Shown here: one piece after another, positions 9,725 to 61,176 of the stretch | How the letters are laid out: every line of letters begins with the position of its first letter | Position numbering within the stretch: the stretch's first letter is position 1 | DNA from: Caecitellus pseudoparvulus | Taxonomy: Eukaryota; Protista; Bigyra: Bicosoecida | DNA length: 64,000 nt | NCBI GenBank assembly: GCA_965644315.1 | Contig: CBFFRQ010000198.1 | Span: forward strand, 1-64,000 | Direction: 5' to 3' | Translations under genes and position numbers: made by a program | Notes under the pieces: generated by a model | Told to the model about the DNA's origin: nothing | Seen by the model: only the letters and a program-made list of their open reading frames with translations | Databases searched by the model: none

Positions 9725-9763
9725 AAAATAATATATGATATTATTATTATATAATATATTATA

Positions 9764-27687: not shown

Positions 27688-30600
27688 TCAGTCTTTGGGC
27701 TGCAGGTTCTTAATGGCGTCAGTGATGCGCTGCTTGAGCGCAGTGGCCTTTTCCCTGAGCTGCTTCGCCACTTGGGAAGGGTCTGTTCCGGCAGCCAGGC
27801 CGAGGCCTCCGGCTAGCGGCATGGCGGAGTTGACCACTGCGCCAAAGGTGCTGCCGCCCGACATGGCCTGCACGCCCAGCAGGATGAAGACGAGCATGAT
27901 GACGAGCAAGACCACAAGCACCATGAGGCTGTACAGCAAGACGTCCCACGAGAGGCCCATGGCTGAGAGGGCTGCTTCGGTGATTTCCCGCAGCAGGATG
28001 TGTATGCCCGCCTTGAACTCCTGGCGGTCCAGCACGTTGTCGGACTCGATGACGTCCAGAGACGCGAAGATGCGCTTGGCCCGCTCGTTGGTCAGGGGCA
28101 GCGACGCATTGGCGGTGAAGTCCACGAACTCGTCGAAGGAGATGCCGCCGCCGTCTGTGTCAAAGGCGTCGTACAGCAGGTCGATGGCTTGGTCGGACAG
28201 GCGCCCGTTGACGAGGGGCAGGGCGGCGAACTTGTTGGCGAGCTTGGTCTTAGCGCCCGCCACGACGCTGTCCATGGCCGCCTTGGCCTTGTCCTTCGCA
28301 GCGTCCAGGGCCACCTTGGCCGCTGCAGTTGCCGCGGCGGTGGCGGCAGAGGCGGCTGCGCCGGGAGATGAGGTGTCTACTCCAGCCCGCTGCAGCTGCT
28401 CCACGAGGCCAGTGATGGTGTTGATGATGGTCTCCAGGCGGTCCTTGTTGAAGCCGCCGAACTGCAGGGCCAGCTTGCGCACGCCGGAGATGTCCCTGCG
28501 CGACAAGGACAGGATGGCGTCCACGATGGCCAGGGCGCCGTGCTGCTCCACCGGCACCACGCTCTCCAACAGCTGCATGATGTGCTCCTGCCGCTTCCCC
28601 AGCTCCTCTGCCACCGCCTTGCTCACTGCCAGCGCCTTCTTGGCAGAGCTGCCACTGGTGGAGCCCGCTGCAGACACAGCCGCCGCAGCCGCCGCGCCAC
28701 TCTGCCCTGCCGTCTGTGCGCGGGACGCGACAGAGGCAGCTGAGCCAATGACGGACTCAGCCTGTGATGCGGCGGCGTTGGAGACGTCTTCCAGGGCACG
28801 CAGACGGGCCTGCATGAGCGCGATGAAGTGCTGGATGACGCCGAGGGCAGCCACAAGCTTGGGCTCGTTCTGCACCAGCGCCTGCACGAAGACGGGGATG
28901 GTGGTGAGGAGCTCACCAGGGTTGCCGCGCAGGAGGATGCCGCCCAGCGTGACGGCCAGGAACTTGGGGTCACGCAGGCGCTTGGCGAAAATCTCGTCGC
29001 CACTGCCCTGCGACAGGAAGTCCGTCACCATGCCCAGGGATGCGAGGGCCCCCTGTGCCTGGGAAATGCCGCCTGAAATAGCCCCTGCCGCGCTGCCCAC
29101 AGCCCCCAGAGCAGAGTCCCGCGCACCCATGATGTCTGCACTGAGCAGGGAGGATAAGTTGGCGCCGCCCACCATGCTGCTGGCGGCGTCCTGCGCCTGG
29201 CCCGCTGCTGCGCTGGCAGATGCGCTCAGCGCTGCCATGGGCGCTGCCACAGACGTCGCAATGCCATGTGAGACTTGTGACGCCGCGAACTTGACCACCG
29301 CCATGGAGGCCTGTGCAGCCTGCGACACCTGCCCCTTGCGGGACCGGGCCGCCTTCCCTGACGTGTCGCGCTGCAGAACCGCCTGCACCTTGTCCACTGG
29401 CCCAAGCAGGCCCATGGCAGACTCGATGGAGGACGGCGACACGCTCTGCAACAGCTTCACCTCCTCGAAGCTGGTCAGTCCAGGGGGCAGCTCTTGGCCA
29501 CCATGGGACACGTCCCTGACGCGCTGCACGATGGCCTCGGCGGCCGGCTTGGGCAGGCGTCGCAGGAGGACGCGGATGAGGGAGTTCCGGATGCTTTCGT
29601 TGTGCAGCAGGGTGAGCTGCACGGTGTTTTGTGTCAGCATGACGCGGGGAATGCCAAGGATGCGGCAGAGGCCCGTCGCGACGTCGCCTTGCATGAGGGA
29701 GAAGAAGCCGATGAGGACACGGTCCACCTCTGGCAGGACAAAGGCCGGGTTGGCGCCCCACACAGCCCTGGACAACAAGCGCACAGAAGCGCCCTTCACG
29801 CCAAAGTACTTCTCCATCGTGCGGTTGGACATGCCCCGCAGGGACTGCAGCGGGTGCAAGCCCACCCCCACACTCCACCGCTGTGCCGCCTGCAGCACAG
29901 GCAGGACTTGGTCCAGCAACCAAGGCCGGCGGGTGGTCTCTTCGTCCCCGCGGTCGCCAGAGGATGCTGCCACAGCTGCAAGGGCAGGGCCGGCAGCCCG
30001 CGCCACGGGAAGAATGCGCAGCAGTTCTTCCGCAGGCGGCAGACGCCCTGTCACGAACTTCAGGATGGTGCTGAGCACGCGGGCCGTGGCACGCACAGGC
30101 TTGGCCTCGCCGCCAACGTCGTCGTCCTCCTCCCTGCAGAAGGGGATGTTGCTGAAGCGCGCAGACTCCACACGCGTCAGCAGCTTCAGAGCCCTGTCCA
30201 GGTCAATGCAGGCGCTGTCACGCGTCAAGTCCAGTCCCGCCTCGGCGGAAGCTCGTGCAAGGTCGTCGCGGACAGCCAGAGACTTGACGGCTGCCGCGGC
30301 ATCGTGGGAGGACAGCGTGCGCATCTCGTCTTCGTCGATCATCAGCTGCACCGTCGCAGAGCTGCTGCGAGCATCGCCCACCAGGCGGTGGAACTGGTTC
30401 GTGTGTTCCTCCTGCTTCTTGGCGAACTTGTCGCTCATCTCCGCCTCCACGAACTCGTCCAGGCGGTCTCGTTGCGAGTACAGATCAGACACGAACGCCA
30501 TCTGCATGCGCATGGCATCGTGCACGGGCAGGTTGGCGCCGTTCACTGCCTCCACCATGTCCAGGCGCAGCTCCTCAGCCACGGCCTGGGACGTGAGCAA

Positions 30601-33600
30601 CTCCCCGATGGGACGGTAACCTGCCATGGCCCGCGCATTCATGTGCTTCATCTGGGCGCGGTGCACGTGGAAGCGGCAGTGGAACTTGCCCCGCATGACG
30701 CTGACGGAAAAGGCGGGGTAAATGGGCATGCCTTGCAGGTCCAGGTTCTTGAAGGCGACGCCCATGGGCGCGTCGAAGTTCCCGTTCAGCCCGAAGGTCA
30801 TGGTGCGCTTGTCGTAGTCCACGGCGCAGCTGATGATGTCGCCGTTCTCCCACTCACTGCCAAAGGAGCCGTCAGCCCCGCCATTCCACTTCTTCCGACG
30901 CTGGCCGTCCCAGGCCCACGAGTTGGGGTCGTCGCCAACGCCATTGTTGCGCTTGGTCGTGAAGGCGTTGTTCACCCAGCCCACCTGCAAGTACCGGTCT
31001 CGCCCAGAGAACATCTGCAGCTCGTAGTAGTACTTGCCTGACGTCACCGCTGCGCCTGGGATGGCTACAGTGGGGAACGTGGACGCCTTGCTGGTGTTCA
31101 AAGAGTACCGGACACGGCCACTGCTGTCCCCCATGAACAGCCCATCGATGCCGAGGATCTGGTACTTCCGCCTGCCAGAAACCATGGGCAGGGGGCGCGT
31201 TGGCCCGCCAGCGTTGAACTCGGGTGCGTACTTGCTCTGCAGCACCTTGCGGCTCTCGCTGCCCGCATACCGCAGCGCGTCGTCGCTGTCGTCCATGACT
31301 GCAAAGTCAAAGTAGTCCTCCGCCTCTGCCACCTGGTCGCCGCCCTTCGGCGACATGGCTGAGCCGCGTCGGGGGCGTCCCTTGGAGTCCGGTGAGCCGA
31401 AGCCCTTCTTCTTGCTCTGCCCTGTCAGCAGACGCATGGTGCTCATCTTCAGCATGGCGTCCTCCTTGTGTTCGTCCAGATCCTCATCATCCTCACCAGG
31501 GTTGCCACTGGAGGAAAGGCGGCCGGGAGAGCCGCCCTGAGCTGGCTTGGCTTGCTCACTGCCAGGTTTCTGCTTCTCTTCCGCTTCAAATCCGCCTGGG
31601 CTGTCTGCCCGACCCGAGGCAGGGGTGGGCAAAGGAGGTGGTGCCTTGGACTCGCCAGCGCCGTCCTGCGGAACAGACGATGAGGACTCGTGAAGTCCAC
31701 TCACACCAGAGCCAGTCAGCGTTGTAGAAGGCTCTGCACGGGCATCGAAAGCCGAGGGTCGGTGCCCGGCGCCCAGTCCGCTCAGGTCCACCTTGGACAC
31801 CTGCGTGGAGGGATCCTCCGCGTGGCTTGCTTCGGACAAGCAGATGAAGTTGTTGTCCATGTCCAGAGTCATCAGCTTGATCTTGCGGTCGGCGCCGGTG
31901 GTGATGAAGAGGAAGTCGATGGCAGCGGACTCCCTGTCCACCCGCAGAGTTGGCATGGAGTAGCTGATCCACGGCTCCATCTTGTGCCGGAAGTCCTTGC
32001 TCATGGGCACGATCTGCGTGATGCTGCCCTCGTGTTGGGGTGCCATCTCAGCCACCACCCTCCAGTCCATCCACAATGACTCTGTGACGTGTGCAGAGCG
32101 AGGCGCACCGAGTACGGCCAGCAGCCGCCCATGTGACGTGCCAACCAGGATGATGTCGTTGGGGGTGGGCATGCTGGGCCGCGGCGCATCCACCACAATG
32201 GTCTCCTCCTCTTCACTCATGGACGCTTGCTTCTCTGTGGCAGCAGCCACGTAGTCCAACCACACCTGCCGCTGTACTTTGCCGTCATCGTCGGTGGCCT
32301 CCCACTTCACCGCCAGGGGGTTCGCGATGGACGAGACCTGCGTAATTCGCTCCCCTGTAGACAGCTCGATGACGTCGGCGGCAAAGTGGTTCAGAGCACG
32401 CGCTTGCTCCATGACATTGCTGAAGTAGATGCCACCAGTGCTCGTCACCGTCGCAAACCACGACAGAGCTCCCCAAGCCTTCTGGTTGGCAGGAACGTGG
32501 TCGATGAGCGGCAGTTGGCTTTTGTACTTCAACTGCAGCCCAGTCACTGGCGCTGCGGCAAACTCCCGGGACGCCTCTGTGTCTGGCTCCAGTCTGTTGC
32601 GCACTTCTCGCGTGGCCCCGACAAAGGCAGATGGGAAGGCGAAGAAGTACGACACGATGCCGACGGGGATGCCGTCATCCGGAATGAGGCCGTGCAGCAG
32701 CAGGCGTGCCTGTCGCTCCTTCTCCAGGGTCGCCTCGTCCTCGTCTTCCAACTGCCCATACCCGTTGCCGCAGTGGAATACATAGATCTCCCGCCCAGCA
32801 GTGAGCAAGTACTTCGTGTCGTAGTCGCCAGTGGCTGGGTCCAGGAGGGGCCAGTGTGCTGTGAAATTGTTCAGGCGCCCTGGAAGCAGCTTGGCGGTCA
32901 TGTGCTTGGCCGACTTCAGCCACTCCGTCGTGGCGCCCAACGGCTCGGCATCCAGGTGAGTCAGTCGCCAAGGCACAATGGACTTTGATGCAGTCTGCAC
33001 GAAGAGGGCTGGCTCTTCCTCTGTGGGGTACCGCTTCGTGCTTTGGACGAGCGCTCGAGCGTCCATGAAGCACTTGCCGTCCTCCCCCGTCAATGGAATA
33101 TCCAGCTTCTCCAGCCTGACGGGAACGGGCTCGTACCCTTCGCCAGGCGGCACGCTCATCTTTCCCAAGAAACCTGGCAGGTCGCTCTCGCCTGAGTCTG
33201 CAACATCCGCGGCCGAATCGTGCACTTCGACAGGGGCGAAATCGCCTTCCACACGGTCGTTGGAGATGCCCCACACGCAGACACCGACTTTGTCAATGCC
33301 TACCAGAGCCACTGATCGCGCCTCGTACGTCTCCCGCTCAGCACGGCACAAAGACTTGACTGCTTCGCCCTCCGTCTGTACGCCGTGGCCCAGCTCTTGG
33401 ATGTACTGCAGGCCGGCGTTCACCTGCCACACGCGCACAGAACCTCGGGAGTCGCCTGTAACGAGGCGCAAGCAGGCGTGACCTTCATCCGAAGACGAGT
33501 TCCGGATAAAAGCGGCGGCAGTGATGCCTTCAAGAGTGGCCACTGACGACGTCGGGTGCGGCACTATGAGGTGTGGCACGATGCTGCCACCACAGTGCTC

Positions 33601-36600
33601 ATCGTCAGCCCTTGATGTTGCAATGCCGTGAATATCGAACATGGCTGTGTTGAAGTCGATGGCTTCAGATATGGCTCGCAGGCGCTCAGGCGCCTCTACT
33701 TCCTCCACAGGAACGTATTTGCCTGCGCCAAAGTCTGGGGCGAAGGCAAAGTCCTCCTGGCGCACCCGCATGTGCATGAGCGCATCGGAGTAGGATGATG
33801 CAGTAAACACGGGGTACAGCGACCCTGAGAAGTCCATCTCGTCACCTTGGAAAGCCAGGGACTTGTCAGTGTACTCGCCGTTCACAGCAAACCACATCTT
33901 GCGGTTGGTGGCGTCAAGCAAGCAACACAGCGTGTCGCCATCGTTCCATCGCACGCCCCACGACTTTCTTCCATTGTGCCACAAGAGGCTGCGGCCTCCA
34001 TCTGCACCCCATGAGTGGCCATCGTCCCCCGTGCCACAACCATTCGCACAGCGTGCCACGAACTCCTCATCTGCCCACCCAGCCTGCACGTCATTGTGGC
34101 TGCCGTGCACCATGTGCATCTCCACGTACCACAAACCACCGCACACTCGCCCTTGTGGCATGCCGGCGGTGGGGAACGAGCCACCAGCACCCCAAGCACT
34201 CAAGTTGTCATCGATACACAAGAGCTGCGACCCCAGCAGCTGCAGACCCAGGCGGCGATGTGGTGCTGGAAGCGTGACAATACTGTTGGGCGCAGATGGT
34301 GCCAGGCGCATGCAGTCTGCGGGCATCTCTTCGCCACCGGCACCCATACCGGCCAAGTCCAAGGACAGCTCAGAGCTGCTGAAGCTGTCCCGTCCGGAGG
34401 CTGCCGCTCCGCCGCCATGCCCTGCACCCGAGGAACTTGGCCGTCCTGGGCGGGCACTGAGCGCTTGTTGCATAGCAGCGGATGAGGGTGGGAGGTCCAC
34501 CTCCTCTGCGATGGGCGAGAAGCCAGGCGGGCCACCGAGGAGGTCTTCTGCGGCTGTCAGAGGCGGGCCCAGTCGGAACACGAACCTGTGTGGGACGGGC
34601 GTAGTGCTTGTTCGGCAGGAGAAGGCAGGCATGAGCCCTTCAACGAAATCAAAGTGCTGGAACGCGACAAAAGCACGGCTGGACCAGTCACCCTTGACCG
34701 TGCACATCATGATGCGGGCATCCACATCGACAGCACAGCCAAACACCAAGGATTTGCTTGGCACGGCGCCTTCATCGCCACCTTCCACATCCTCAAAGTC
34801 ACGGTCAAGGGTCCCAAACCTATCATGCTGGTACAAGAAGCCGTGTCTGGTGCCAGCTTCAAAGGGCAACCAGCCCCACGAGTGTGCGTCGTGCCCGACA
34901 CCAGCTTCGTCGCTGTTGCCCTGGAAGGCGACATCGGCCCACCCAATGGACAGCTCCTGCAGAGAGGAAGCATCGCAGCCAGGCTGGCGGCAGTACTCGA
35001 GTTCAAAGTAGTGGCGGCCCCCAGACACGAGGGCATCACGCATGACAACGACAGCTTGTTGAGCTGATGTCAGCACGCCGCCAGAATCGGACACCTTCAA
35101 CGGCACCCACCGCACATCGCAGTCCTCGGACACGCGCGCGTTGCCGTAGTACAGCAGCAGCAGGCCCCTGTTGAAGCGCGTGTTGATGGCACCGAATACC
35201 TGCCGCAGGCGCCTGCCGTAGGGCCGGAATCCCAGCCCGGCAGGACTTGTCGCCTCAGACATCTCACCACCCACCGCAGCGCCCAGACGCGAGTCCTCGT
35301 CCTTGAAGTGAGCCAGCGGAGTGGGGCACACCCCAGCGCCAAAGCTAAACTGAACGTGCAGGGTCTGCACAGTGGTGGTCGTGCGCCCTTGGATGAAGGG
35401 CACGACCGCCAGGTCTGCCTCGTGCAATGCCTCCTTACCAAAGGCCATGCACTTGGAGGACGTGGAGCCGTCCACAGTGATGAACATCTGCCGCTCGTTC
35501 ATGTCCAGCAGGATGCCGATGCGAGACCCACTGCTGAAGCGGGGGACGTTGAAGCCTTTGCACAGTTGGATGCCGTCGGGAGCAATCGGCACGTGCTTGG
35601 CTCGCTCCTCGCTCACGAGCCACACATTGTTGTTCCATGCGCGCTTGAGCCCTTCGCCCTCGGCGTGGCCCGCAGACATGGCCTGCACAAACTCGTATTT
35701 GGCGATACCGATGCCCAGGGAGCAGTCCTGGGGCAGGTCATGCAGGGTCACTTCCCAGTACCACTTGCCTCGCGTCATGGCGGCAGCCATGTGCGCACCC
35801 ACGGCGAAGCGCCCCCCAGCACCACCCACGTCCACAGTGTCCAGCATGTACTTGAGGTCGGAATAGTCCCCCACCTCCTCCTCGCCATCTTCGTACCTGA
35901 TGTGGCTGAAGTCCTTTGCACCAGCTGCCGCCCCGACAGTGGACACCTGCTGTGGCTGCACAGATTCGTGATCGTCGTACAGCGCAAATCCACCTTCCTC
36001 ATCATCGCTGCTCGACGACATGTCCAGGTCAGGTGCTGCACCTTCCGCCACCTCGACGGGCTCAAGCTCAGACGCCACACTGTGACGGCTCTGCACTGAC
36101 CGAGATGTAGATGCACGCATTGAGCGCATGCCGTGCCCTGTGCGAGCTGTCTTCCCTGCGCCAACTCCGTCCGCTCGCTTCACTGCCCGGCGGGCGGTGG
36201 GGGGTTTGGCAACCGTCACTCCGTGGTGCAGCAGCGCCGTTCCTGCGCAGATGGTGGGCATGGGCTTGTCGTCCGGCAGGCAAGACACGACAGCCGGGAG
36301 TGGCTCCGGCACGGCCAGTTGCGATTCCACCACATCCGTGGGGTGCTTGAAGTACACCTGGCGACGGCCAATTGCTGCACCTTCAGATCCACCTTCTGCA
36401 CTCCGCAGGATGTCTGCCTTTGACAACGGCACAGGGGGCACGGATGACACCAGGCTCTCTGCGTATGGGCGGAAACCTGGTGGGGGCGCGAACTTCAGCG
36501 GGGCGCCCAAGCCTGAACCGAAGCCCAAGGCCAGGCTCACGCCTCCAGAGGCAGTGGCGATGCAGACGGCAGGGCACATGGGCGCAGAGGTGCCCATGAA

Positions 36601-39600
36601 CTCATTGTGGTCGGCGTCCCGAGGAATTCCAGTCGCAAAATTACACGTGGCGACGCCCCATCCTCCAGTGTAACTGCCGTTCTTCCCGAACATCATGATC
36701 TGCGCGCCAATGTCAATGGCAACACACACAGTGTCCCCTGCTTGAATGGCACGCTTAGGGTCGTCTTGGTCGTCACTCATGAACGACTTTGCATGCGTAG
36801 ACTGGTCATCTCCGCTCTCAAATTTCAGCCAGCTGTTGCCGGGATCAGGGATGACCAATGCCCAGCTGCGATCCACGTACCCAAGTGTGTTGTATGAGGT
36901 GTCAGGTGTGAAGGGGTTGGGTTTTGAGCGGTCGGGCTGGTACCACCCGATGCGGATGGGGTTGCCTTCGTACAAGGTGGACTCAGCATACTTCTGAATG
37001 TTCACTTCGTAGTACCACTTGCCGCTCGTGGCGCCACACGCCATGCCAAAGAGCTTCATGCCAAAGTTCCGTGTGACGGCCATCTTGCGGTCTACCACGT
37101 CCCAGTAATCCTTTCCGTTCCCAATGCGCCACATGTCAGCCGGGTTCCACGCCTGGAACTGCTGCTCGTTGGCGTCATCTGCCTCGTACGCCTTCAAGGC
37201 CGCGGCAGTGGTCCGTACTGTGAAGCCATCCTCCACCACCTCCGTGCCCTCCCCTGAGCACCAGAAACTGAGGCCATACCGCACAGACATGGGCAGCACA
37301 CACGTCGGGCGGCTTTGCTCACCCACTTGGCGCTCAGGTGGCTTCAATACATCGCCGATGAAGCCAAAGTCATCTGACGGCCGCAGGAACTTGCAGCGCT
37401 CCTCTGACGGCATCGCTGCGGCGTCAGGGGCAAAGGCACGCACTTGTACCTTGGCGCTGCCAATGCTCATCACTGGCGTCAGCCCCCCAAAGTAGACGAC
37501 GTGGTTGAACGCCAGTACCATCTCTGGGGTGTCCAGCTGCGTCCACACGTCTCCGTCCAGACGGAAGAAAATGGACCGGCTGTCCATGTCCACCGCCAAG
37601 CACAGCGTGATAGAGTCTTTGAAGTACTGCTTGCCCTCCGTCTTGTACTGAGCATCAGGATGCGATGTGATGTACGCCACCCTGCTGGCTGGGTGCCAGC
37701 TGTACGTGCCTCCGCGGATTTCGCCGCGCAGGGGCGCGATGGCCCACTCGCCTTGCACACCACCCAGGTGTTCGTTGTAGTCCACCGGCTCCAACTTGCG
37801 CGAATCATCCATGAAGCCAATTGCTACCATCTTTCCGTACCCCTCCACATCCTTCACGCCGCTGACCTCCACTTCAAAGTAATGCTTGCCGCGTGAAACG
37901 CGCAGCTGAGGCATGGCGATCCAGGACAGCCCCTGCTCTGCACGGTCTTCCACCTCCACGGAGAACGTTCCGTTCATAGACACCACCGTGTCGGCTCCCG
38001 GCGTCAGGACCTGCAGCATTGCACCTTCAGATGAGCCTTGCGCAGCGGCAGGCCGGGCTGTGACGGCCGCGGCTGGGCCTGCCGCACCGGAAGTGTCGTC
38101 CTCCACGCCGGCACTGCCAGACTGGATAAAGGGCAGAGAAGGGCGAAAGCTGTGCTTCAGCATGGTCGTCACCAAGTACGCCAGGTACTTGATGCTGGAC
38201 TTGGTGCGTGAGAGGCTTTCTGAGGCGTTGGGGGAGTCGATGCACAGCTGGTTGATGCCCACGACCACCTGCTCCAGGGCCAGCGTGCCCATCAAGTGTG
38301 ATGCCCGATGCATGGGGAACTGTGCCACCACACATGAGATGCGCTGGCCGAACTCTGCCACGGCGTACTGCACGCGGGACTCCACCTTCTCCACCGACGC
38401 TCGGATGGTCTCGGAGTCATATGCCTGCCCGATCTCGCGAGCCATGCCCTCTGCCAGCACCGGCCGCAGCAGGTACTGCACCACCGCCTTGGGCAGCAAG
38501 TACCCGTGGACAGGGGACCACTGTGTTAGGGACCGCTCAGCTCGGCGCGCACGGGGCAGGATGAAGCTGGGCACAAACATGCGCACCATCGCCTCTCGGG
38601 TGGACATGCGAACTTGCATGTCCTGAGCGTTGGCCTGCAGCCCTGCAGCCACACGCCGCCCCCGCACCCGAGTGGGCAAAGGTGCTGTCGCTGCGCTGCC
38701 TAAGCCTGCCGCCTCCTGCGCTTCACGTTGCTGCCGCTCAGTCCGTGCAAAGCCCGCCTCCTCCGCGGCGTCCAGGAACGCTGTGGCAGCTGCATGCCGC
38801 TTGATCTCAGCCGCGATGTCGTCCTCCGTCTCCGCCTCGGCCTTGCCAAAGCGCCCAGAAGGAGCTGACCGCACGGCCTCCGTGGCCGCCGTATCCATTG
38901 GCGCAGTGCGCAGGACCTTGCCGCCTGCGCCTGCTGCCTTGCGCTGTGTCTTGGGCAGCCGTGCCAGCTCGGGCGTGGGCCCTGGCACAATGGGCTCCTT
39001 GGCCTCGCTGTGCCACGAAAACTGCCCCTCCTTGCTCATGAAGGCGTCTTCTTCCACAGACTGGGTGATGGCTTGGGCGGAAGACAAGGAAGGGGGTGAG
39101 CACCACAGACTCTGCAGCGCAGGAAGCGGCGCCCCTGCCGCAGACAGGATGAACGGCGCAGTGGCGACGAAAGCGGGCGGCACGTACGTGCGGCAAGCCA
39201 TACGACTGACAGCCAGGTCCTGCCGCGCCAGGCGGTACGCTGCCGCCACGATGGCTCGAGACTTCATGCTCTTTTCTGACGAGGCGCCTGTCCCTGACCC
39301 GTCGCCAACAGCGGCACCGACCGCATCCCCCAAGTCAGACTTGGCGGCACCACCACCTCCCCGTGCCCGATCCTTGCTGGACTTCTCAGACGCCTTCAAG
39401 CTCGCAATGGCCTTGGACAGTGTGACAGACTCACGCAACTGGGCCCAACGTTCAGCGGCACTCAGTTTACCCTCACTACCGGGTGCCTTGCCGTGGGCAT
39501 TGGCTGCAGAAGTCATCTGTGCCATCTGGAACACTGACAGGGACAGCACTCGCTGCATGTAGGTGGCCTCGGAACGCGCCGTGTGCTGCAGGCGTAGCAT

Positions 39601-45600: not shown

Positions 45601-48600
45601 CAGCACCGCCAGCAGGTGGTGCACTGGCACGCTCAGCTTGGCAGCAATGTCAATCATGAGGCTGATGGAAGAGGCACCGGCGAAGGACCCAGACAGCAGT
45701 GCAGACATGATGTGAGCTGCAGTGGGCACGGGGAGGAGCACGCTGCCCCAGCGATCGACCAGCGGCACGATGCGCGGGAAGGCAGGATTGGCCGTGAGCT
45801 CCTGCAGCAGCCGCGTGAAAGAGTGGATGTCAGTGGCCTGCGTCAGCTCGATGGCACGCATGACGTCAGCACAGGCCGGGTCGTCCTTGAGCAGGTCGGC
45901 TGCCACCTCCACGTCGCCGTGTGCGAGCCTGGCCAGCGTTGCGGCGGTGGGCACGAGGTCCGTGGACAGTCCCACGGACGAGACGAAGTTAGAGTTCGCC
46001 GCGACGTACCGCGCGAAGCGGGGCCCTGAAGCTGACGACATGATACCGGCCAGCAGGTCAGGAGACACCTCCAGGGAAGTGGCCACAGGGACGAAGGCGC
46101 CCAGGTCGCTGAGTTGGGTGCGAATGATGCGCACCATGGAGACGAAGTGCTCCTCATTGGGCACGGAGAACGCGGAACAGATGGCAGAGGCACCTGCCAC
46201 GAGGAACTCAGTGCTGCCTGTGGCCAGACCCACCAGCCCGTACGCAATGCGAGGGTTGCACGACGCGGCCACAGCAAGCGACCGCACGTCCTCCATGAAG
46301 GATTTCTGCCCCGTGGCGACACCGATGAGGGAAGCTGCGTCACGCAGACCCATCTTGTCGCCCAGGCGCAAGCCGGCAGAGACGATCTCCTTGGCGTCGT
46401 CCGCTGTCGCCGCAGACACGAGGCTCCAGTACGCAGTGGCAGTGCCTGGCAGCTGGTTCTTGGCCTCCAGCATCAGCGCGCCCATGAGCATTTCCAGGCG
46501 CTCGTTAATTGTGCGCATGGCCTCCTGGCGCGCCGTCTCAGCCAGCTGGCTGATGAGGGCGGCGTCGTCCACTGCGTCCGCGGCGGTGGAGGCAGCTGCG
46601 CGCTTGGCAGCCTCCGCCTCAGCCTGCACTGAGGCGGAGATGTCTGCGGCACGCATGAGCTTGTGCCCCGTGGAGCACAGCACCAAGTGCAGCAGGGACA
46701 CGATGGCGTTGAAGAGGGCTTCAGAGGCCACCCTGTCGTCCTCCTTCAGCGCAGTGGTAGTCTTGGCTGCGCCAGTGGCAGCAGCGGCCATGCTGTCCGT
46801 CATGCGCGACACCTTGCCCACCTTGTCGCTGATGGCGGTGGACACGGAGGGGTCCACCAGGCGGGCGTCAATGAGCAGCTTCACCAGCTCCTGCGCCATG
46901 TCGTGCACAGACAGGAGGGGGCTGGAGCGCAGTGCGGTGAGGATGGCAGTGGGGGAGATGCCGGACTCGTCCGCCCCCTGCGCCACCTGCAGAGACTTGA
47001 TGGTCATGGTGGTGTTCAGGGTGAAGTTGGACGCCGTCACGACTCCGTCGATGATGAGCGGCAGCAGCGCACGCAAGTGCTTCACCACCGCCAGCATCTG
47101 GCGGAACTCACGAGGAATGGAGTCAGTGGTCAATACAGACTCTGACTCGAAGTCCGCTGCCATGGACGCACGCAGCGCTTCCACCCACGGGCCGTACTTC
47201 TCCGCTGCACTGCCGGCGGCTGACGGGTCAGCCCCGGCGCCCTGTGCAGCAGTGGGCGGTCGTACCAGCATGCGCCACGCCTTGCCGAAGCACTTCTGCA
47301 TGGTGCTCACGTGGTAGTGCCCGATGTGCGACACGACAGCCTTGTGCCCCTGTCCAGAAGCGGTGCCGGAGCCCTGCACACCCGCAAAGGCGCCCTGGCT
47401 GCGGTCCGCCGACTCTGCCTCTTCCTCCTCGTCCCCGTCAGACAGGCGCAGCAGGCTGTCCACGTCAAAGCTGCCAGCGTCCATGGACGCCAGGCCTGCC
47501 ATGATGAAGAAGGCAGCACCCACACCCCTGCACAGGTCAGGGCCCACCTGCGTTCCCAGCAACGGCGCGATGCCCCCGAATAGTGTCCCCAACCGCTGCA
47601 GCAGGATAGAGTAGCTGGACACGAAGCCCTCCTCCTTGGCGTAGGCAAGGGCAGTGGCCCGCGCCAAGTGGGCAGGGTGAGGCGGCACAGAAGTGTGCGA
47701 CAGCAGCGTCTGCACCGTGCCCTGCAGGTTGGTCAGAAAGCTGAACACATTCGTGGCGATGGGCGTCAGCTGCTGCACGACGGAAGAGGACGCCATGAGA
47801 CGCTCCATGACCTGAGTCGCCGCACCACCCCCCTGAATGTGTTCCAGCACCTCAGAAGACGTGTCCTGGTCCGCGAAATACGCCACTGCAGCCCGCAGGC
47901 GCTGAGGGTTCTCTGTCAGGAACGTCACAGCCTGCTGCAATCGCTCGGGGGGGTTGATGTCGTAGTCCCAGTCGTTGATGCGGCTGAGGGAGTCGGGCTG
48001 GTGCTGGTCGCCCAGCGTGCGCCCAATGAGCCCTGCGGCATCCCCAGCCGACAGGGACAGCACGATGTCGCCTGCGGGCGTGCGCAGCTTGCTAGACAGC
48101 GGCTCCAGCGCGACAGACGCCACAGTCTTGCGCTTGTGGTCAGCGGGAACCAGCTTGGAGGTCGCGCCCGCAGCGGCGTCCGACACCAGTCCTGACAGCG
48201 CAGCCCCATCCTTCTCCACAGCAGCGGCAAAGCCAGCTGCAGCACCCCCCGCGTTTGCAATGGTGGCTTCCACTGGCGCCACCTTCTTCAAGTGGAACCA
48301 CAGTCCAGTGTGTGACTCCAACTGCTGGAACAGCGTCAGCGGGTGCCCACCTGCTGACACGGCCGCCCCAACGGCAGACTGAGCAGCCGAGGCAGCAGAG
48401 CCCACCTTGTCCAGCAGCGCACTCTTGCAGTCCTCGACAAAGCCCAGCAGGGCACGCTGGGCGCGGGCGGCGAACTTGGCCGACTGGTTCATGGAGTTCG
48501 ACACCATGTCCACGAGGGAGGCGCTGACGCCGAAACGCAGCAGCCAGCCGCTGTTGAACAGCGCGAACGGGTTGCCGAAGAGCAGCTCCAGGGCCAACTC

Positions 48601-51600
48601 CAGTTCCTCAGCACTGCCCCGTGCGCCAATGAACTCCGCCACAGCTCGCAGGACGTGGGGCGGGATGCCCAGCTCGAACTGCACTGACTTGCCCGACAGC
48701 ACCGCCTGAATGGCAGACGGCATGAGGTTGGCCTGCACCTGCTGCGCCATCTTCGCGCGCAGGCCGGCCAGGGTGCAGCACCGACACACCGTCCACGCCA
48801 CCGCCTCCAGGCGCTCCATGAGCGGCAGGTGCTTCTCGAACTTGCCAGCAGCCCCACTGATGTCCATGCCGGCCTGTAGCCCAGCGATGACGAGGGCGGA
48901 CAGGGAAGGGAAGTGTCCCATGGACGCCCGCACGCAAACGGACAGCAGCACGTACTGCTCCATGCCCAAGGAAGTCTCCAGCTGCTTGCGGTTGGCGGCC
49001 AGGGCCTGGAACTTGGCGGGCAACACGCTGGCCCAGTCTTCGTTGGCTAGGGATGCCGCCACTGCCTCCAGCGTCTCGGGCTTGGTCGCTGCCACCCGGA
49101 ACTCGTCCAGGCCCTGCCCCAGCGGCGGCCAGGACGTCAGGTTTCGGGACATGGCAGACGACATGAGCACGCCCAGCTGGTACCGCCGCACGAGCACATC
49201 GCGCACGAAGGAGCTAGTGGCGCCCACGCCAAAGTTCTGTGCGCGCAAGAGGTCGCGGAAGGACGCGTCCACGCCCGTGCACAGGCTGGCCTCAGTCACC
49301 AGCTGCAGCACGTGCCACATGAGGGAGCCCTCCGATGTGTCGAACATGGACCCAGCCTCGTGTGCCTGCCCAGTGAGCAGCATGCGGAAAATTGCCAACG
49401 TGTGGTACCGAATGCGGCTGGCCTCACCGCCACGCAGCTTGGCCTGGCTGGCAAAGTCATACGTCGTGCGCACCTTGCCCAGCATGGCGCGCAGAATGGG
49501 GTCCAGCAACGCCTCCACGCCTGTCTGTCCGCCCACTCGGTCGAAGACGTTCTCAGCCAAGCCCTCCGCCGCAGACACAGCGGCCCCCGACGCGACAGCT
49601 TCCCGCGCAGCGGTGAGACTGGACACGTTGGCCCGGTCCAGCATGACGCCCAGCAACTTCACGATGCGGCGTTGGTCTGCTGGAGCCATGGACGTCATAC
49701 TCTGCAGCAGGCGCGCGACAAAGGGCAGCTTCAGGCGCAGCACACTACGCAGGGTGTGGGACCCCACCGCCTGGCTGGCGGCATCCTCCAGGGCTGCACG
49801 TGGACCACGTGTCACCACGCCGTCCAGCACTGTCGTCACGCACTGGGGCGCCTCCGCTGGCAGCTTGGCGGCAGTCATGATCTTGTCCACCGCCTCCAGA
49901 CGGGTGATGCCGCTGGCCACCAGCAGCATGGCGCGTTGGGAACCGGTCAGGCCGGGGATGTCGGGCGGGTCCATGAGGGCCGCCGCCTCGTCGCCCAGCT
50001 CCTCGATGGTGTCTGCCATGGACTTCAGCGAGTGGTCCAGCTCCTCGCTCACGCCCAGCTGCCCTGCCACGGCCTGCACTGCAGAGTTCGTGGAGGCCTT
50101 CCGCAGGGCTTGGGTGGCGGCGTCAGCGCCGCCTGCGCTACGGGCCGCTTGCAGCGCCTTGCTGACAGTCACGTTCCCCAGCACGACGTGCTCCGCGATG
50201 CGATCGATGCGCACGTCAAAGCCTGTCGCAAAGCCTGCAAGAATGAGCGGCAGGCGGTGCAGCTCGGCGGGGATGCTGGCCAGCGCGTCCTTGCTCAGAC
50301 CCGCCAGTGCCTCTGTCCCCGCCATTTCAGACAGCTGCCCCAGCATCTCCTTCAACACCAGGGCACCTGTGCGGGTGATGTCCACAGACTTCTTCCCAGA
50401 CGCAAAGGCCAGAATGGCGCGCAGAGCAGAGGCCTTCACCCCCACTAACTTCTCGAACATGGGCCCCAGCAGAGTCACCGTCTCGTCCACGTCACCCCGT
50501 GCGGCAGCGGCGAAGCCACGCAGCGTGTTCTGGAACGTACTAAGCGCTTCTGTGATGTCTTTCGGATTGATGGCGCCGTACGCCGCCCGGATCTCAGGCG
50601 GCAACTCATCCGACACGTACTCCTCCAGCAACTCGTCCATGGCCGCCTTGCTGGCCAGAGCCGCTTTCTGCGCCGCCTCGCTGCCAGCCAGGGCGTCGGC
50701 TGCCTTGTCTAGGCCCTTGCCAACAGCCGCGCCGTCCTGGGACGTCACTGCCTCGGCTGCCGCACTGCCGGCCTTGGCAGCCTTCTCCCCAGCCTCAGCG
50801 GCGGCCTCCTTCGCTTCCTGGGCCTTCTTCAACAGCTCGTCCTTGGCAGCCTGCATCTGCGCCAGCTTAGCCTTGGCTTGCTCCACATGCGCCTCAGTGT
50901 GCCCCTTGGCTCGCATGAGAGCGGCCTGGCGTTCCTCCGGGCTCATCTTCGCGAATAGCGTGGCGTGGCCAAAGGCGGCATCCACGGCTGAACCAGCGAT
51001 GGCGCCAACCCGGCCCTTTGTGTGCTTCGTCACTTGCTTCTTCACAAGCCCCTGCAGCTTGTCCATGATCAAGTCGATCAGCAACGTCTGCAGCTGGGGG
51101 TCGCTGAGCAGGTCTGACACGTCCTTGTCGCGCGCAGACAGGACGCGCTCCAGCAGCTTGCCGAACTTGGTGATGGCGTTGCCGACATTCACCTTCCCCA
51201 CACCCGGCACCTCCACTGTCTTGTCTCCCAGGGCTTCTGCCGCCAGGGCCGTGCTGTCTCGCATCAGGGCCTCGGGGTTGTCCCGGTATGCCTGCGCCTG
51301 AGCCTGGGCCTTGTCCAGGGTCGCCTGCCCCTCCAGCAGGAAGGGCGCCGCCTTCTTCAACGCCGCCTCCACTGGCGCATACACCTCCCCCATGCGCTTG
51401 CGCACCTCCATCTCGGCAGCGGCACGGATCTCCCGCGCCTTGGCCACGGCAAACTCCTTCCCGGCCTCTTTGGCAGCTGCAATCTCCGCTTCAATGCGCT
51501 CCTCAGCTTGCGCCATGAGCTTCTCAGCCTCCAGCTGCCCCCGGCGTAGAGCGGCCTCCTGTGCCTCCTCCACAGCCTTCACGATGGCAGCGGGGGCCTT

Positions 51601-54600
51601 GGCGTGGAACTCGTGTGCACGGGCCAGGTGCGCAGGGGCAGCCTGTGCGAAGGCACGGGCAGCGCCGACTGGGTCCGCGGCAGCGCCCGCCAGACCTTGT
51701 TTCGCAGCCCCCGCACCAGCCTGCAGAGCAGCGTCCAATCCAGGCGCAGAGACGCCCAGCTTGCTCTGTGCCATGGCGGATGCGCGTTGGGCCTGCTGCA
51801 AGGCGCCGTCGATGGCGGCGTTCCCTGCACCCACCACGCCGCTCATGTGTGGTGCAACGAGGACTGTGCACAGCTCGTTTAGCAGGTACAACGCCGTCTC
51901 CTCGGAAGGTGACGTGATGACCCGCGCGGCCAGGTCCATCAAGCGCAGCATGCGCTTGTCCACGTTCTGGTCCTCCAGGAAGTCCATGAGGGCCGCGACG
52001 ATCTCGCCTGTCGCACGCATGCGGTTGGCTTCGTCAGACGTCACCATCAAGTGCACAGCTTTGGACAGCTTCACGATGCGGGCGATGAGGCGCTCATCCT
52101 TGACCGGCGTCAGCTGTGTCGCCACTGGTGGCAGTGCGTCCATCACTGCCGACATGTCCCGCCGTGCGAAGGCGATGAGCAGTCCTGCGAGCGTGGGATC
52201 CACCTTCAGCTGCTCGAGGGCCAGCTTGGCCAGGCGCTCAGGAGTCAGCTGCCCCTTCACCAGGGCCAGCTGCGTCTCCAGGTCAATGCCGGTGCGGGAG
52301 GCAGTGAGGGCCATGGCGTCCGCGAGCATGGAGGAGGCGGCGTCCTTGGACAGGGCAGCAGTGATGCTGGACACGTCGACAGACAGCAGCGCCTTGCCCA
52401 GGTCCTCCGCCGCCTGTCCGGGCTTGGCCTTGGTGCTCTTGCCATTCAGCAGGGGGCTCTTGGCCAGCACCTCCCGCACGATCTCCGATACGCTCTCCAT
52501 CATGATGTTCTCCGCTTCCCGGCGCAGGTTGTTGGCCTGGGCCAGACGGGCCGTCACGATGCCGAAAAAGGTCACGGCAGCAGCGGCGAAGGGGAGGAAC
52601 CGGTTGGGCTCGATGATGGCGCCCAGCACCCAGTACACGGCCACCAGGGTGAGGTAGCCCCCCCACGCGGTGACCATGAGGAAGAGGTACACGCGAAGCA
52701 GCGCGTTTACCAGCCAGCGCAGGGTGTACCGGAAGTGCTCCAGGCCCGTGAACTCCTTCTCAAAAGTGATAGGGGAGGTGGCGGAAGCTTGGTCCACGAA
52801 CTCCACGATCTTGGGCGTGCGCAGGTCAGACAGCTTCTCCACCCGCTCAATGACGATGCGGGAGGCTTGCTTGGGCAGCACGAAGCCGATGAGGCGCCCC
52901 GCCACCTTGTCTGTCCGCGTCATGACAGAGGACAGCACGCCTGATGAAGTGCTCGCCTGCTGATGCTGCCGTGCAGCCTGCAGCTGCCGTGCCAGGACGG
53001 AGATGCTGGACTTGTCCAGGGTCTCGTCCTCCTCGTCCTCAGCCACCTCCTTCAGGCGCCCGCTGCGGCAGGTGCAGCAGTACCACGCCGAGCACACGGA
53101 CTGTGGGCACCGCATGCAGCAGCAGGTGAGGGCTGCAGCCATGCGCTCCTCACGCTTGCGCTCCAGCTCCTCCAACACGTCCTCAGCCTCGTTCACGACG
53201 CCCTGCCCGATGGCCTTCGCAGACTTCGTCTCCACGGTGCCGCTGGCTTGAGCGCCCTTGTACAGGGCGTCGGCGCTGGCCACGTCGTCAGCGTTGGCTT
53301 CGCCTTCAAGCGCCTTGGCCTTCTTGCGCTGCTTGAGCTGGGAGTCGGTTGCCCGACGGTACCGCAGCAAGTGCGCAGCGGCCACAGACGTCTTCAGGAA
53401 CGACTTATACACGTCAGCATCGAGAATGTCGTCGCCTTCACGGGGGGTGGGCTGGTTGCTGAAGGGCATGGCGCCAGACGCAGCGGCCCGGTTGGCGCCT
53501 TCCGTGTCCAACGCAGGCAGACGTCGCAGACGATCCGCCTTAGAGCTTTCCATGGCCTTGGCCTGCGCGGCTGCCACGATGCTGGTGCCAGACGACGGCA
53601 CAGCGACGGCCACATCGGCACTCGCCGCACCCTCCCGCTCCACCTTCACCTCAGGTGCATCCAGCACGTTACCGTCGCCGTCCTCAGCTGTGGCCTGTGC
53701 TGCAGAGCTCGTAAACTGCTTGCCCTTGGCCTGATTGCGCTGCGTCTTTGCCTTTTTCTTGTTCTCGTCTTCCTCTTCATCCGAGGAAGAGGAAGACGAG
53801 GAGTTGTCAGCTGGCTCGTCCGAGACGCGCTTCAGGACGATGGGGAACTCGTACTGCCGCTGGCGCAGCAAGTACTCTGCGTCGTGGAAGGTGAGGCCGT
53901 GTGCAGGGCCGATGGAGGCGCCGTGCAGCAGAGGGCGCCCAGTCTGGAAGGGGTGGTACAGCGGCACCTGCAGGTGGTACAGGATGAGCTCAATCACCGC
54001 GACTCCCACGAATCCCGCCACGAAGAGGTAGATAATAATCTGGTTCACCAGCAGGTTCGTGGACCGGAACACCTCCCATGGCTCGTACAGAATGGAGTTG
54101 AACGTGAGCAGGTTGGAGCTCTGGTCCAGGTCAAAGGCCGTAGTGTTCACGAAGACCGTCTGGGAGTACAGCGCCAAGAACAGGAAGGGCAGCGTCGGCA
54201 CCAGCACTTGCAGCACCTGCAGCACGACAGACAGGAAGAGGATGAAGTTGGCCGCGGACTGGTCAGCAGCAATGGCGTTGGTGCGCTCAGCCAAGGGTGT
54301 GTTGCCAGCGGTGGTGCTTGCACCCACCGCCCCGCCCACCGTCACGCCCAGCGCATCATCGCCGGCAGCGCCAAAGTTGCACATGCCGCAGCAGCCGCCC
54401 CTCCGCCCCTCCTGCTGCTGCTCGTACAGCTCGCGCTGTTCGTTCTGCCAAGCCTTCGACAGCACCAGAGGGCGGATGCCCTTCAGGTAGTTCAGCTCCT
54501 TATCACGGTCTACGGCCAACTTCAGTTCAGACTCGATGACGGAGGCCGTCAACGGCGCGGCCAGCTCCCGGTGCGTGCGGCAGAAGGTCTTGTACGCCTT

Positions 54601-57386
54601 CTGGAACTGGACCAGGGGGATGTAGTCGGACTCCACACCCGTCACTTCACACTCCGACGCCAGGAAGAACTTCAGCATGCTGCGCTGGTACAGCTGCTTG
54701 CTGGACACTTGCTCCTGCACCAGAGCACTCTTGTCCTTGAAGCGCACCGTGCGGATGACAGTCGTGCGCTCCGTCTCGACGGTCACGTTGAAGCGCTTGC
54801 GTAGGATGGTCTGGGCGGCCTCTGACAGCACATCCATCTCCGTGAAGCCGTTGCGCGCGCAGTACGCGACGTAGCCCTCGTTGAACACCGCCACTCGCTC
54901 CATGCTCTTGCTGACTGCCTCGAACTCCTTCTCTGGCGCGACGGAGGACGGGTTTCGCAGGCGCAGCACATCCTTCAGCACTCCCCACCGAGACCGCCGC
55001 AGGCCAGGCGGGAAGGGCTGGCAGAACACAAGTCGCGCGACGGCACTGAGGAAGGAGATGTCCCGCTTGGGCGTCTGGTAGTAGTCCCGGATGTAAGAGG
55101 AGATGGAAGTGGTCAGCTTGGGCGCGATGAGCCAGGCGGCCAGGGAGGTGGCCTGGAAGTATCCCCAGTCCAGTTCCGGCAGCGCGCGCAGCTGGGGCAC
55201 GGGGTCCATCAGCTCCAGCAGTTGGCCCCCTGCTGCGGCCTTGGCCTTGGCTGCGTCCAGCTCCTGGCTCTTGGTCTGCCGCACCATGTACGAGTGCAGG
55301 TAGTGCCGCGCAAAGCGGTTGGCAAACACCGCCACCGCGGCGATGGAGAGGCCCATGAGAGTGGCCAGCAGCACGGACAGGCACACGGCAATGACCAGGG
55401 GAATGTTATTCAGCAGGGTGATGACGGAATTCTTGAAGGTGCCCTTATCGTCCACCTCGTACCGGAAGAAGCCAATTTCTGACTTCTGCCCCAGCACGTA
55501 CCGGCGGCTGGCTTCCGTCACCAGCTGCACAATGTCCCCAAGGATGGCTTCAGAGATCTTGCCAGACTCCTGCGTGCCCAGGCCTGGGCCACGACCTGCG
55601 ACAGCCCCCTGCTGAGAAGCAGGCGCCGCTTGCAGCACGGACACTGGGCAGAAGCCAGGGTTGAACCGGGCAGGCACTTCACGAAAGCGTGGGTTCAGCA
55701 TGGAAGCTGAGAAGGCGGACAGCCAATGCGGCTCAAGCTGCAAGTACACGTCCTTGGTGGCAAAGAGCCATCGCCCTGCGTTTTGCTGGGCCAAGTCAAT
55801 GGCGACGATGGCGTCGTACGACGGCTCGCGGTCTACCCAAGCCTGGATGCTCTGCAGCACGCGGCGCGTGGCGGGGTCCAGGGACACGCCAGCTGAGAAG
55901 GCACCTCCATCAGACACGGCGTAGCCTTCTGCGCGGATAATTTGGTCATTCAGGAGGCCAGCATACACGCCGCCTCGTGTGACGGAGACGCTGTGCTCGT
56001 GGACGGGGACACTGCCCAGCGTCGTCCCGCATGTCAAGCCGTCGACGAAGGTCGCGTTGTCGGAAATGAACTCGGAGTCGCACAAGTCTACAATCATGCT
56101 ACAAGACAGCTGAGAGGAGCCGGTGCCGCTGTTGGCGGCGCCGCCCTGCTCAGGTAAGCCGCAGCTGGAGCTGTCCTGGAACAGCTCTGTGCGGGCCGGG
56201 GCAGTGGCGCAAATGACGCCGCTGGGCTCTGACGCGTTGACACGGACAAAGGCCCCTGAGGCGTGCGGGTAGCGAGCAGCAGACGTGGTGATGTACACCT
56301 CCCCACCTCGGGTCGTACAAAAGTCAGACAGCGTGGGGCTGGTAGAGTTGTCCGTCGCGTTGAAGCTGGAAAAAGTGGGGGAAGTCGCATTCAGCAGGGA
56401 CAGGTCGCACTCTGCCCGATACCGCGTGCCGATGTCGATGGAGGAGTCTGTGTACACGTCTCGCAGGTTCACAATGCCTCGCTCCGCTGACACGCTGACC
56501 CGCCCGCCGACGATGCTGGTGAGGTCCACATGCATCGAGTCAGCTGCGTAGACAGACACGTGGCCAGTGGGGCCCAACACCACCTCCTTGCCGCTCTGGA
56601 AGGTGCCAGGCGGCGTCTGCACCACCAGATCGGCAACGTTGGAAGATATGTACAGTGTGCCGTTGTACTGGTACGGCAGTCGCAAGTCCACTTCACACGG
56701 GATGGCGGCATTTGAAGTGGAGATGTTCACAGAGTTTGCCGCTGAGTCCAGCGCCAGAGCTGTCTCGGGCAGGGTGGCATCAATGATGGACTGGAAATTC
56801 TCCCTGATGAAGCGGAACGTCTGGTCCCGCGGCCTGGACATGCGGATGGACAGCTGCACTTGGTCGTTGCTCTTCGGCGTGTCCAGCAGCGTCAGGCGGC
56901 AGAGGTCGGCGGAAAAGTACAGGTCGCCGTTGGGGTCAAATGGGGGGCTCACATCCCCAGGCCGGTAGAAGAACTGCCGGTACAGCGAGTACAGTGAGGG
57001 GATGACCTGCGGGGGAGGGTTGGGGGGTACAAGTGTGAAGAGTACACGGTCGCACAGCGAACGCGGCGCCGCCGCACCATGCTGATCGTTAGCAGCAACG
57101 CCAAGAAGCAGAGGCGCAGGGTGGTGCCCTGTGTCCGCGTGATGCGCATGTGTGTGAGGGGGAAGATGACCTTGCCTGCCAGAGGGTCGTCCAGCTCAGC
57201 CCTGCGCTTCGCGGAGGCTGCCTTTTCCTGCTCCACAGCTGCCTCCTCCAACTCGGCGTCTTCGTGGGACTGCAGGAGCATGGACACCTCCAACTCGCCC
57301 ATGAGGGAGGACTGGTCGGCATACGCCTTTGCAGTGCGTGTTTCCTTTCGGGGGACGTCCCCCGCCTCGCCAGAAGCTGCCGCCAT
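27688..57386 (-). CDS. Giant (~9,875 aa) multi-pass membrane protein with six SPRY domains, probable beta-propeller, helical regions and C-terminal EF-hand pair; exons 57386-57078 and 57006-27688
   Basis: 29.3-kb uninterrupted ORF. A 71-nt GT-AG intron (57077-57007) joins MAAASGEAG...LLLTISM in frame to VIPSLYSLY...DVSPP. SPRY motifs GK(W/H/Y)Y(F/Y/W)E; EF-hands FDTDGGGISFDEF and LDVIESDNVLDRQEF. Confidence 0.85.
57007..57077 (-). other. Spliceosomal intron (71 nt)
   Basis: GTGCGG...ccaaccctcccccgcAG with pyrimidine tract; removal restores the frame. Confidence 0.8.
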
Positions 57387-60933: not shown

Positions 60934-61176
60934 GGCGGCAGCGGGCTGTTCGCCGAGGCAATGCGCCGATCAACACGCCAACGGAAGCGGCCTACACGAG
61001 GGTAGAGGGTGGTGGAGCACACACAGGGGTGGAGCCCAGAGCCGCTCAGCCGCGTGCATGACACTGTTGATTGTGTGGTTTTGTCATGCGAGGGTGCATT
61101 GTCCTCGCTTCTCCGGCACCTGCCCCTCCAAACGGAGCTGGTTGTGGCCCAAACGCCCCACACTCTGCCACGCCGC

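Follow-up and report, generated by a model that had tools for sequence, protein, structure and literature searches.

The 64,000-nucleotide stretch analysed here (the window) comprises positions 1-64000 of contig CBFFRQ010000198.1 (64,447 bp; C198) in the 30.6-Mb assembly GCA_965644315.1 of the bicosoecid protist Caecitellus pseudoparvulus. Much of it is taken up by one giant gene, which lies, with all of its parts described below, on the minus strand. Exon 1 (57078..57386; 103 codons, with the ATG at 57386) would encode an acidic cytosolic N terminus and the first half of a transmembrane (TM) helix, TM1. A 71-nt GT..AG intron with a pyrimidine tract (57007..57077), read directly from the sequence like exon 1, separates it from exon 2 (27688..57006), which continues in frame and contains the 9,754-codon open reading frame (ORF) found without a stop in the ORF listing (27688..56952). 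The joined exons specify 9,875 amino acids (aa) with a predicted mass of ~1.04 MDa. Since DNA of ~63% G+C gives ~3% stops among random codons, we infer that a frame of this length did not stay open by chance. Unless stated otherwise, residues are numbered from the start of the 9,754-codon ORF, to which the full protein adds exon 1 and the start of exon 2; either exon 2 or the ORF served as query in our searches.

Contig C79 carries a second copy, which aligns with that of C198 without gaps over 8,607 residues at 97.4% identity and is collinear with it across aa 7745 and 8244, to aa 8606. By the Nei-Gojobori method, the ratio of non-synonymous to synonymous substitution rates (dN/dS), computed from 8,606 gapless codons in which 772 differences are synonymous and 256 non-synonymous, with no indel, is 0.10. 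As dN/dS is low in all 500-codon windows (0.015-0.15 in each), the whole frame is coding and constrained. Divergence rises in its 3′ part. Exon 1 differs at nine positions, eight of them synonymous and one non-synonymous, and the intron by ~9 mismatches and a 2-nt indel that leave the splice sites and pyrimidine tract intact, which supports the exon 1/intron model. By these sequence criteria, the giant ORF belongs to a real, selectively maintained gene, and its product of ~9,875 residues has the length given in the first-pass annotation of this DNA, which placed TM1 across the intron.

The two loci are best described as a segmental duplication and not as alleles, because their upstream flanks are unrelated: homology starts sharply at window position 57,666, 280 bp upstream of the ATG, and does not extend into the sequences beyond (window 57667-64000 compared with C79:319,380-328,667). 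At its other end, the C79 copy gives way in frame, at codon 8606, to a TTAGGG array of ~860 bp (C79:355,204-356,067), which indicates that the chromosome broke within the gene and was capped by a telomere; the contig end, ~7.6 kb further on, has a second such array (C79:363,662-364,015). No other full paralogue is present in the genome, where the C198 gene is the only full-length member, and two parts of the protein discussed below, the middle and the five-SPRY region, occur there only in the C198 and C79 copies.

What kind of protein does the gene encode? Kyte-Doolittle analysis of the ORF identifies hydrophobic helices at aa 519-537, 903-921, 972-990, 1421-1439, 1452-1470 and 9676-9694, in the same places as the TM segments annotated at first reading. 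Ahead of the first of these lies a putative luminal or extracellular ectodomain (aa 1-518; 55399..56952), which AlphaFold2 (AF2) models as beta-helix-like (model m8d5cc26fb36f; predicted local distance difference test, pLDDT, 80-95). It contains 10 cysteines and 7 N-X-S/T sequons. Its part conserved in relatives begins at ~aa 205-220, and the cysteines at aa 248, 264, 284, 308 and 435 are conserved in 31-52 alignment rows. The conserved cysteines and the sequons would place the domain outside the cytosol, in keeping with the ~500-aa Cys-containing, beta-rich luminal or extracellular domain first described.

The ectodomain is followed by TM helix a (aa 519-537; 55342..55398; Kyte-Doolittle score 2.62), whose position is conserved in relatives, and by a conserved, presumably cytosolic alpha/beta domain (aa 538-902; 54247..55341; pLDDT 80-96), for which comparison with the program VIA-align gave no fold above noise and winged-helix matches at noise level. 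Next come TM pair b/c (aa 903-921 and 972-990; 53983..54246), joined by a short outer loop according to hydropathy, the relatives and the AF2 model, and TM hairpin d/e (aa 1421-1470; 52543..52692; pLDDT 84-93 in a homologue model). The hairpin carries a signature that defines the family described below, W-x-LGAIxNPxxFLPYA, which here reads LGAIIEPNRFLPFA.

The AF2 model of the N terminus of exon 2 (1,038 aa, 65 alignment rows) has a pLDDT of 76.2 and a predicted template modelling score (pTM) of 0.65. In VIA-align, aa ~25-334 of the ectodomain model resemble 4qrk_A (Z 10.7, root-mean-square deviation 3.3 Å over 153 residues, 13% identity), with other beta-helices at Z 6-7.5. The likeness to the beta-helix "putative adhesin" proteins (PDB 4qrk, 4ygu, 3pet) and to other beta-solenoid surface proteins is one of fold only; unlike the adhesins, the domain described here forms the outer part of a multi-pass protein from a eukaryote and has conserved cysteines. 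Foldseek found no match in the PDB at E ≤ 1e-3, either for this N-terminal model or for the model of a short relative from Roombia that is described below.

At the opposite end of the chain, Pfam EF-hand_7 (PF13499) marks a degenerate EF-hand pair (aa ~9590-9650; 28003..28185) at 20.9-25.2 bits, below the gathering cut-off of 30. The family alignment shows loop 1 to be one residue shorter, and loop 2 one residue longer, than the canonical 12, whereas the pairs at the homologous position in relatives pass the Pfam cut-off and have canonical loops. A profile of the family C terminus (A4) matches only EF-hand proteins in the PDB (EFCAB6 at 1e-44, calmodulin at ~1e-19). Thus, the two EF-hands of the first-pass annotation are in place but with a sub-threshold score and altered loops, and because of this one-residue deletion and one-residue insertion, the Ca2+ regulation that it proposed is doubtful for the giant protein. 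The pair is followed by C-terminal TM helix f (aa 9676-9694; 27871..27927; Kyte-Doolittle score 3.53), which is conserved in 14 relatives, by a conserved Gly-rich segment, FGAVVNSxxPxxxGxG (aa 9697-9722; 27787..27864), in which the Phe is invariant in alignment A4 and which is helical in a homologue model, and by a charged tail of ~30 aa. Two terminal TM helices had been suggested; helix f is clear, but the second corresponds to the weakly hydrophobic Gly-rich segment, which does not stand out as a TM helix.

The two ends of the protein belong to a family that is spread across protists. An exhaustive HMMER search with aa 380-1560 returned 102 cluster representatives at E ≤ 1e-3, 23 of them at E ≤ 1e-10, and relatives of 1,200-5,600 aa. 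Named sources are Rhodelphis marinus, Roombia truncata (a 1,213-aa "mini" form), the choanoflagellates Salpingoeca infusionum and Bicosta minor, the ichthyosporean Chromosphaera perkinsii, and the ciliates Protocruzia, Tetrahymena and Paramecium, and there are also metagenomic members, one of which has genes of eukaryotic type (Myb, Hikeshi and kinase) as neighbours on its contig. Members occur in Holozoa, Alveolata, Cryptista, the Archaeplastida-related Rhodelphis and the protist studied here. Among the ~30 hits whose source was looked up, which do not amount to a systematic survey, there were no animal, fungal or plant members. The family is probably ancient.

Whole-protein comparison shows that at least 12 relatives match the N-terminal modules (aa ~300-830, 900-1060 and 1400-1630) and, at their own C termini, aa ~9563-9738. 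Because distant relatives carry the N-terminal modules and the C-terminal EF-hand plus TM module together in one chain, both membrane ends belong to one ancestral protein, which bears out the initial proposal of one giant gene whose product is membrane-anchored at both ends. Family module I (jackhmmer envelope aa 420-1007) spans ectodomain cysteines, one TM helix, the cytosolic alpha/beta domain and the TM pair. The hairpin signature (aa 1441-1457) aligns with 47 relatives; its P and L are invariant, and the "N" of its NP turn is E in the giant protein, N in most relatives and S, A, D or K elsewhere. The C-terminal signature (aa 9528-9748), consisting of the EF-hand pair, LGLS, the TM helix and FGAVVNSxxP, aligns with 14 relatives. 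Alignment A3 was built from near-full-length rows and places the signature columns correctly, and the TM pattern is likewise conserved between the giant protein and its relatives. The family signature had been singled out in the first-pass annotation as a combination of LGAIIxP..FLP with EF-hands that could be sought in other protists, and the motif does mark the family.

The giant protein shares its module order (ectodomain part, TM helix, cytosolic domain, TM pair, NP hairpin, arm, EF-hand pair, TM helix, FGAVVNS segment) and TM pattern with Tetrahymena malaccensis KAL4475110.1 (3,975 aa, "hypothetical protein"), Paramecium sonneborni CAD8105620.1 (3,691 aa, "EF-hand domain-containing protein") and Rhodelphis marinus EP00736_P000306 (3,628 aa). 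Unlike these three, it is 2.5-3 times longer and alone contains six SPRY domains and a propeller-like region, and it also departs from its relatives in the indels of its EF loops and in the hairpin E. The arm between the membrane ends ranges from ~340 aa in Roombia through 2-4 thousand aa in most members to the 8,205 aa of the giant protein.

To judge by negative searches, the family is undescribed. We found no Pfam family, solved structure or paper describing it, and no full-length match to a characterised family emerged, in agreement with the initial view that the protein was new. Searches of word-indexed protein collections gave no match, either to the N-terminal 1,560 aa, where hits were filtered by total length, or to the C-terminal 2,009 aa; ESM Atlas look-alikes yielded nothing usable for either end; and family profiles A5 and A6 had no match in the PDB. 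The AF2 model of the Roombia member (60 alignment rows; pTM 0.61, with conserved modules at pLDDT 80-95) matches known structures in VIA-align solely through its EF-hand pair, and a structure search of the atlas with it gave TM-scores of at most 0.14. Three annotations attached to relatives were set aside: a weak DUF7807 match on the Roombia tail, seen in 1 of 15 members; a precomputed Ion_trans (PF00520) tag on the 3,593-aa metagenomic relative P0112, for which hmmscan at E ≤ 0.1 gave only weak EF-hand matches; and the name "cytochrome c biogenesis protein CcdA" on the ~3,100-aa P0106/P0107 of the P0017 cluster, which looks like an annotation artefact, Pfam finding only EF-hands on P0017.

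Between the membrane ends, aa 1471-9675 amount to 871 kDa, so that the ~1 MDa cytoplasmic loop first estimated is indeed large but somewhat smaller than stated. Its first part (aa 1471-6339; 37936..52542) is a putatively cytosolic, Ala/Leu-rich, non-repetitive arm, presumably helical by its composition, with no Pfam match and no internal repeats; patches at aa 3491-3722 and 5053-5306 are shared with the relatives P0002 and P0004. There follow five SPRY domains (33742..37935), at aa 6340-6508, 6625-6789, 7046-7204, 7291-7461 and 7590-7737, and, further on, a last SPRY domain (aa 8623-8765; 30658..31086; 76.6 bits in Pfam) that resembles SPRY2 of the ryanodine receptor (RyR) RyR2. SPRY (PF00622) exceeds the Pfam gathering cut-off, with 166 bits for the C-terminal half. 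Pfam alone gives five significant SPRY stretches, to which iteration of a hidden Markov model built from the protein's own copies added aa 6340-6508; the initial count of five tandem domains plus one thus holds.

The region between the fifth and sixth SPRY domains had been called WD40-like. WD-like motifs can be made out by eye in aa 7745-8375 (31828..33720), which we describe as an unverified propeller-like region, but they are unaccompanied by any Pfam match, PDB sequence match or significant internal repeat. A Ser/Gly/Pro-rich low-complexity linker, defined by sequence and composition (aa 8376-8622; 31087..31827), leads to the last SPRY domain, after which comes a second Ala-rich region (aa 8766-9580; 28213..30657), also presumably helical by composition, in which the ratio of non-synonymous to synonymous differences per site (pN/pS) is 0.03-0.15 among the copies discussed below. 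As SPRY was found in none of the family relatives scanned, the SPRY domains, together with the propeller-like region, are a lineage-specific insert outside the core plan. Four more SPRY-containing open frames of 5,895-7,774 codons occur in the same genome (C69:637223-637738, C13:531655-532260, C18:822782-823936 and C42:239115-239435), so that the organism seems prone to encode giant proteins with SPRY domains.

The first-pass annotation had likened the domain list to that of ryanodine receptors, while observing that MIR and RIH domains and a GGGIGD pore were not to be seen. The likeness does not extend to ancestry. With the whole frame scanned as two halves and ten pieces at E up to 1, hmmscan found neither RIH (PF01365) nor MIR (PF02815), nor did the whole-frame scan match Ion_trans (PF00520) or RyR-TM (PF06459); Pfam identifies only SPRY and the weak EF-hands. 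No GGGIGD, GG[IVL]GD or related filter pattern is present in the protein, and by hydropathy its C terminus contains one strong TM helix rather than a six-helix pore domain. In phmmer searches of the PDB, RyR chains match only the last SPRY domain (4p9l_A, E 5.7e-13), and the N-terminal half of the protein has no hit. Like the ryanodine and inositol 1,4,5-trisphosphate (IP3) receptors, the protein belongs to the megadalton size class, has a large cytosolic mass and combines SPRY domains with an EF-hand pair ahead of C-terminal membrane helices. Unlike them, it lacks MIR, RIH, RYDR_ITPR, RR_TM4-6, Ion_trans and GGGIGD, and its membrane helices are mostly N-terminal, behind an ectodomain. Since the relatives scanned have no SPRY domain, the resemblance reflects shared generic modules, and judged by its sequence, the giant protein is not a relative of these receptors.

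The last 2,010 codons of the gene and ~2.7 kb of 3′ flank form a multi-copy block (24963..33717, unstranded) with at least 20 copies in the genome, on contigs C136, C147, C19, C170, C211, C81, C190 and ~12 more. The copies of the last 1,500-2,000 codons are 89-98% identical in protein and ~91-95% in DNA sequence. Every copy on a contig of known extent lies at most 45 kb from a contig end, with its 3′ end facing that end; C79 excepted, it is contig ends of this kind that suggest a subtelomeric position. The copies begin exactly at aa 7745 or aa 8244, two common break points, upstream of which they have sequence that is common within each break-point class, unrelated to C198 and full of stops, with nothing that looks coding.

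The copies keep ORFs of 1,300-1,700 codons, despite premature stops at aa 8010-8157 in several, one frameshift at ~aa 8187 and one stop at aa 8793. Among them, dN/dS is 0.09-0.16 for aa 8244-9754 and 0.19-0.30 before aa 8244, and because it stays low despite the few stops, they have evolved as coding sequence. No window exceeds a pN/pS of 0.35, for which reason a reading akin to antigenic variation was rejected as the main explanation. The tree of copies is star-like, with the 3′ end of C198 nested within it and grouping with the C170 copy.

Upstream of the giant gene, on the same strand, lie ordinary host genes, one for an Arm-repeat protein (59056-60933) and one for an MFS_2 transporter (61177-63225). 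Outside bases 1-20,130, the window consists of protist DNA of 58-67% G+C. Positions 1-20130 have 22-34% G+C in 2-kb windows and tightly packed ORFs, and adjoin host DNA of ~60% G+C at ~20.1 kb; megablast of this block against phage records gave no match. Two long ORFs between the block and the giant gene, 21668-23695 on the minus strand and 23723-24844 on the plus strand, match nothing in Pfam and may be spurious, because the DNA there is so rich in G+C.

Taken together, our results favor, at a probability of roughly 60%, a single gene whose product, a multi-pass membrane protein of ~1.04 MDa, would serve as a membrane scaffold or sensor and belongs to an undescribed eukaryotic family, with no other full-length member in this genome, in which the membrane core is divided between the chain ends. 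The gene model, the membership of the family, the domain content and the purifying selection along the entire frame follow from the sequence data; we infer the topology, the function and the way in which the two ends pack, the most likely function being that of a scaffold or sensor anchored in the membrane at both ends. The N-terminal half of the core would consist of a signal-anchor, the disulphide-bearing beta-helix-like ectodomain, a TM helix, the cytosolic alpha/beta domain, the TM pair and the LGAIxNPxxFLPYA hairpin. The C-terminal half would consist of the EF-hand pair, joined directly to the last TM helix, and FGAVVNSxxP. The cytosolic arm would then form a closed loop held at both membrane ends, and the ectodomain may be the binding part, for a ligand outside the cell or in the lumen. 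In most members, the EF-hand pair could couple Ca2+ to the last helix as a Ca2+ switch, with that helix packed against the N-terminal helices. In the lineage studied here, docking sites in the form of six SPRY domains and a propeller-like region would have been added to the arm, and the EF loops would have degenerated.

Several observations weigh against this interpretation. The C79 copy, which lacks the C-terminal module, has the same low dN/dS, so the C terminus may be dispensable or the truncation recent. The presence of the 3′ third as separate conserved copies raises the possibility that part of the protein acts alone. The presumed helical nature of the arm is read from composition and a homologue model. 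In addition, the fold searches were dominated by the EF-hand pair and the beta-helix, so that the TM core was barely compared with known folds.

It is conceivable, though unlikely, that the frame is not one functional unit. Its 3′ 1,500-2,000 codons could represent mainly an independent, tail-anchored SPRY/EF-hand protein, or the locus could be a chromosome-end chimera that is open by chance or of recent origin. The multi-copy state of the 3′ block, with its sharp common break points, the long ORFs and low dN/dS of the copies, the grouping of the C198 3′ end with the C170 copy and the 3′ rise in C198-C79 divergence would all fit such a scheme. However, the collinearity of C79 with C198 extends past both break points to aa 8606, dN/dS is low along the entire frame, and distant relatives end in the same EF-hand plus TM module, making the full architecture ancestral. 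Upstream of the copies themselves nothing looks coding, and in several of them the first third is interrupted by stops or a frameshift.

Could the protein instead be a giant Ca2+-regulated ion channel, with approximately seven helices from both ends forming an oligomeric pore gated by the EF-hand pair and the cytosolic assembly, and thus resemble the ryanodine and IP3 receptors in function while being unrelated to them? In nearly all relatives the last TM helix is immediately preceded by an EF-hand pair, polar residues are conserved in or near membrane segments (the N of the NP turn, the N-S of FGAVVNS), and the cytosolic domain is very large; the PF00520 tag on P0112, which hmmscan did not reproduce, would point the same way. 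We nonetheless regard a channel as quite unlikely, since there is no Ion_trans, RyR or IP3 receptor domain and no selectivity-filter motif, aromatic residues, Gly and Pro predominate at the conserved TM positions, the NP-turn "N" is replaced by E here and by S, A, D or K elsewhere, and the EF loops of the giant protein contain indels. Similarly improbable, in our estimation, is a broader proposal in which the family would be an ancient class of membrane machine (a Ca2+-coupled channel or a mechanosensor) with its core drawn from both ends of a chain of up to a megadalton, and in which the C-terminal module would in this organism also form a chromosome-end multigene family that, through its products or by recombination of its sequences, supplies or exchanges the C-terminal half of the core, possibly for the C79 copy, which has none of its own.

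Finally, the idea that the truncated copies are silent donor cassettes, recombined into the full-length gene at the chromosome end to swap the cytosolic SPRY/propeller/EF-hand part and kept open by occasional use, is very unlikely: it would account for one complete locus near a contig end, ~20 5′-truncated copies in the same orientation near contig ends, purifying selection on copies with no evident upstream coding sequence or start, and a star-like tree with the full-length gene nested among the copies, but the pN/pS values suggest no diversifying selection, variation in an exchanged cytosolic part would bring no obvious benefit, and no mosaic tracts were demonstrated.

A predicted product of ~1 MDa is very large for a membrane protein, and through it the gene reveals a family that spans several eukaryotic supergroups and for which we found no Pfam entry, structure or paper. 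A membrane core split between the chain ends, joined by an arm that varies 25-fold in length, would be an unusual design and may shed light on how cells anchor and regulate very large proteins. That the 3′ third has been amplified at chromosome ends, under purifying selection, is a separate puzzle, which concerns how chromosome ends make new genes. As the ciliate members of the family, in Tetrahymena and Paramecium, are genetically tractable, its function should be directly testable.

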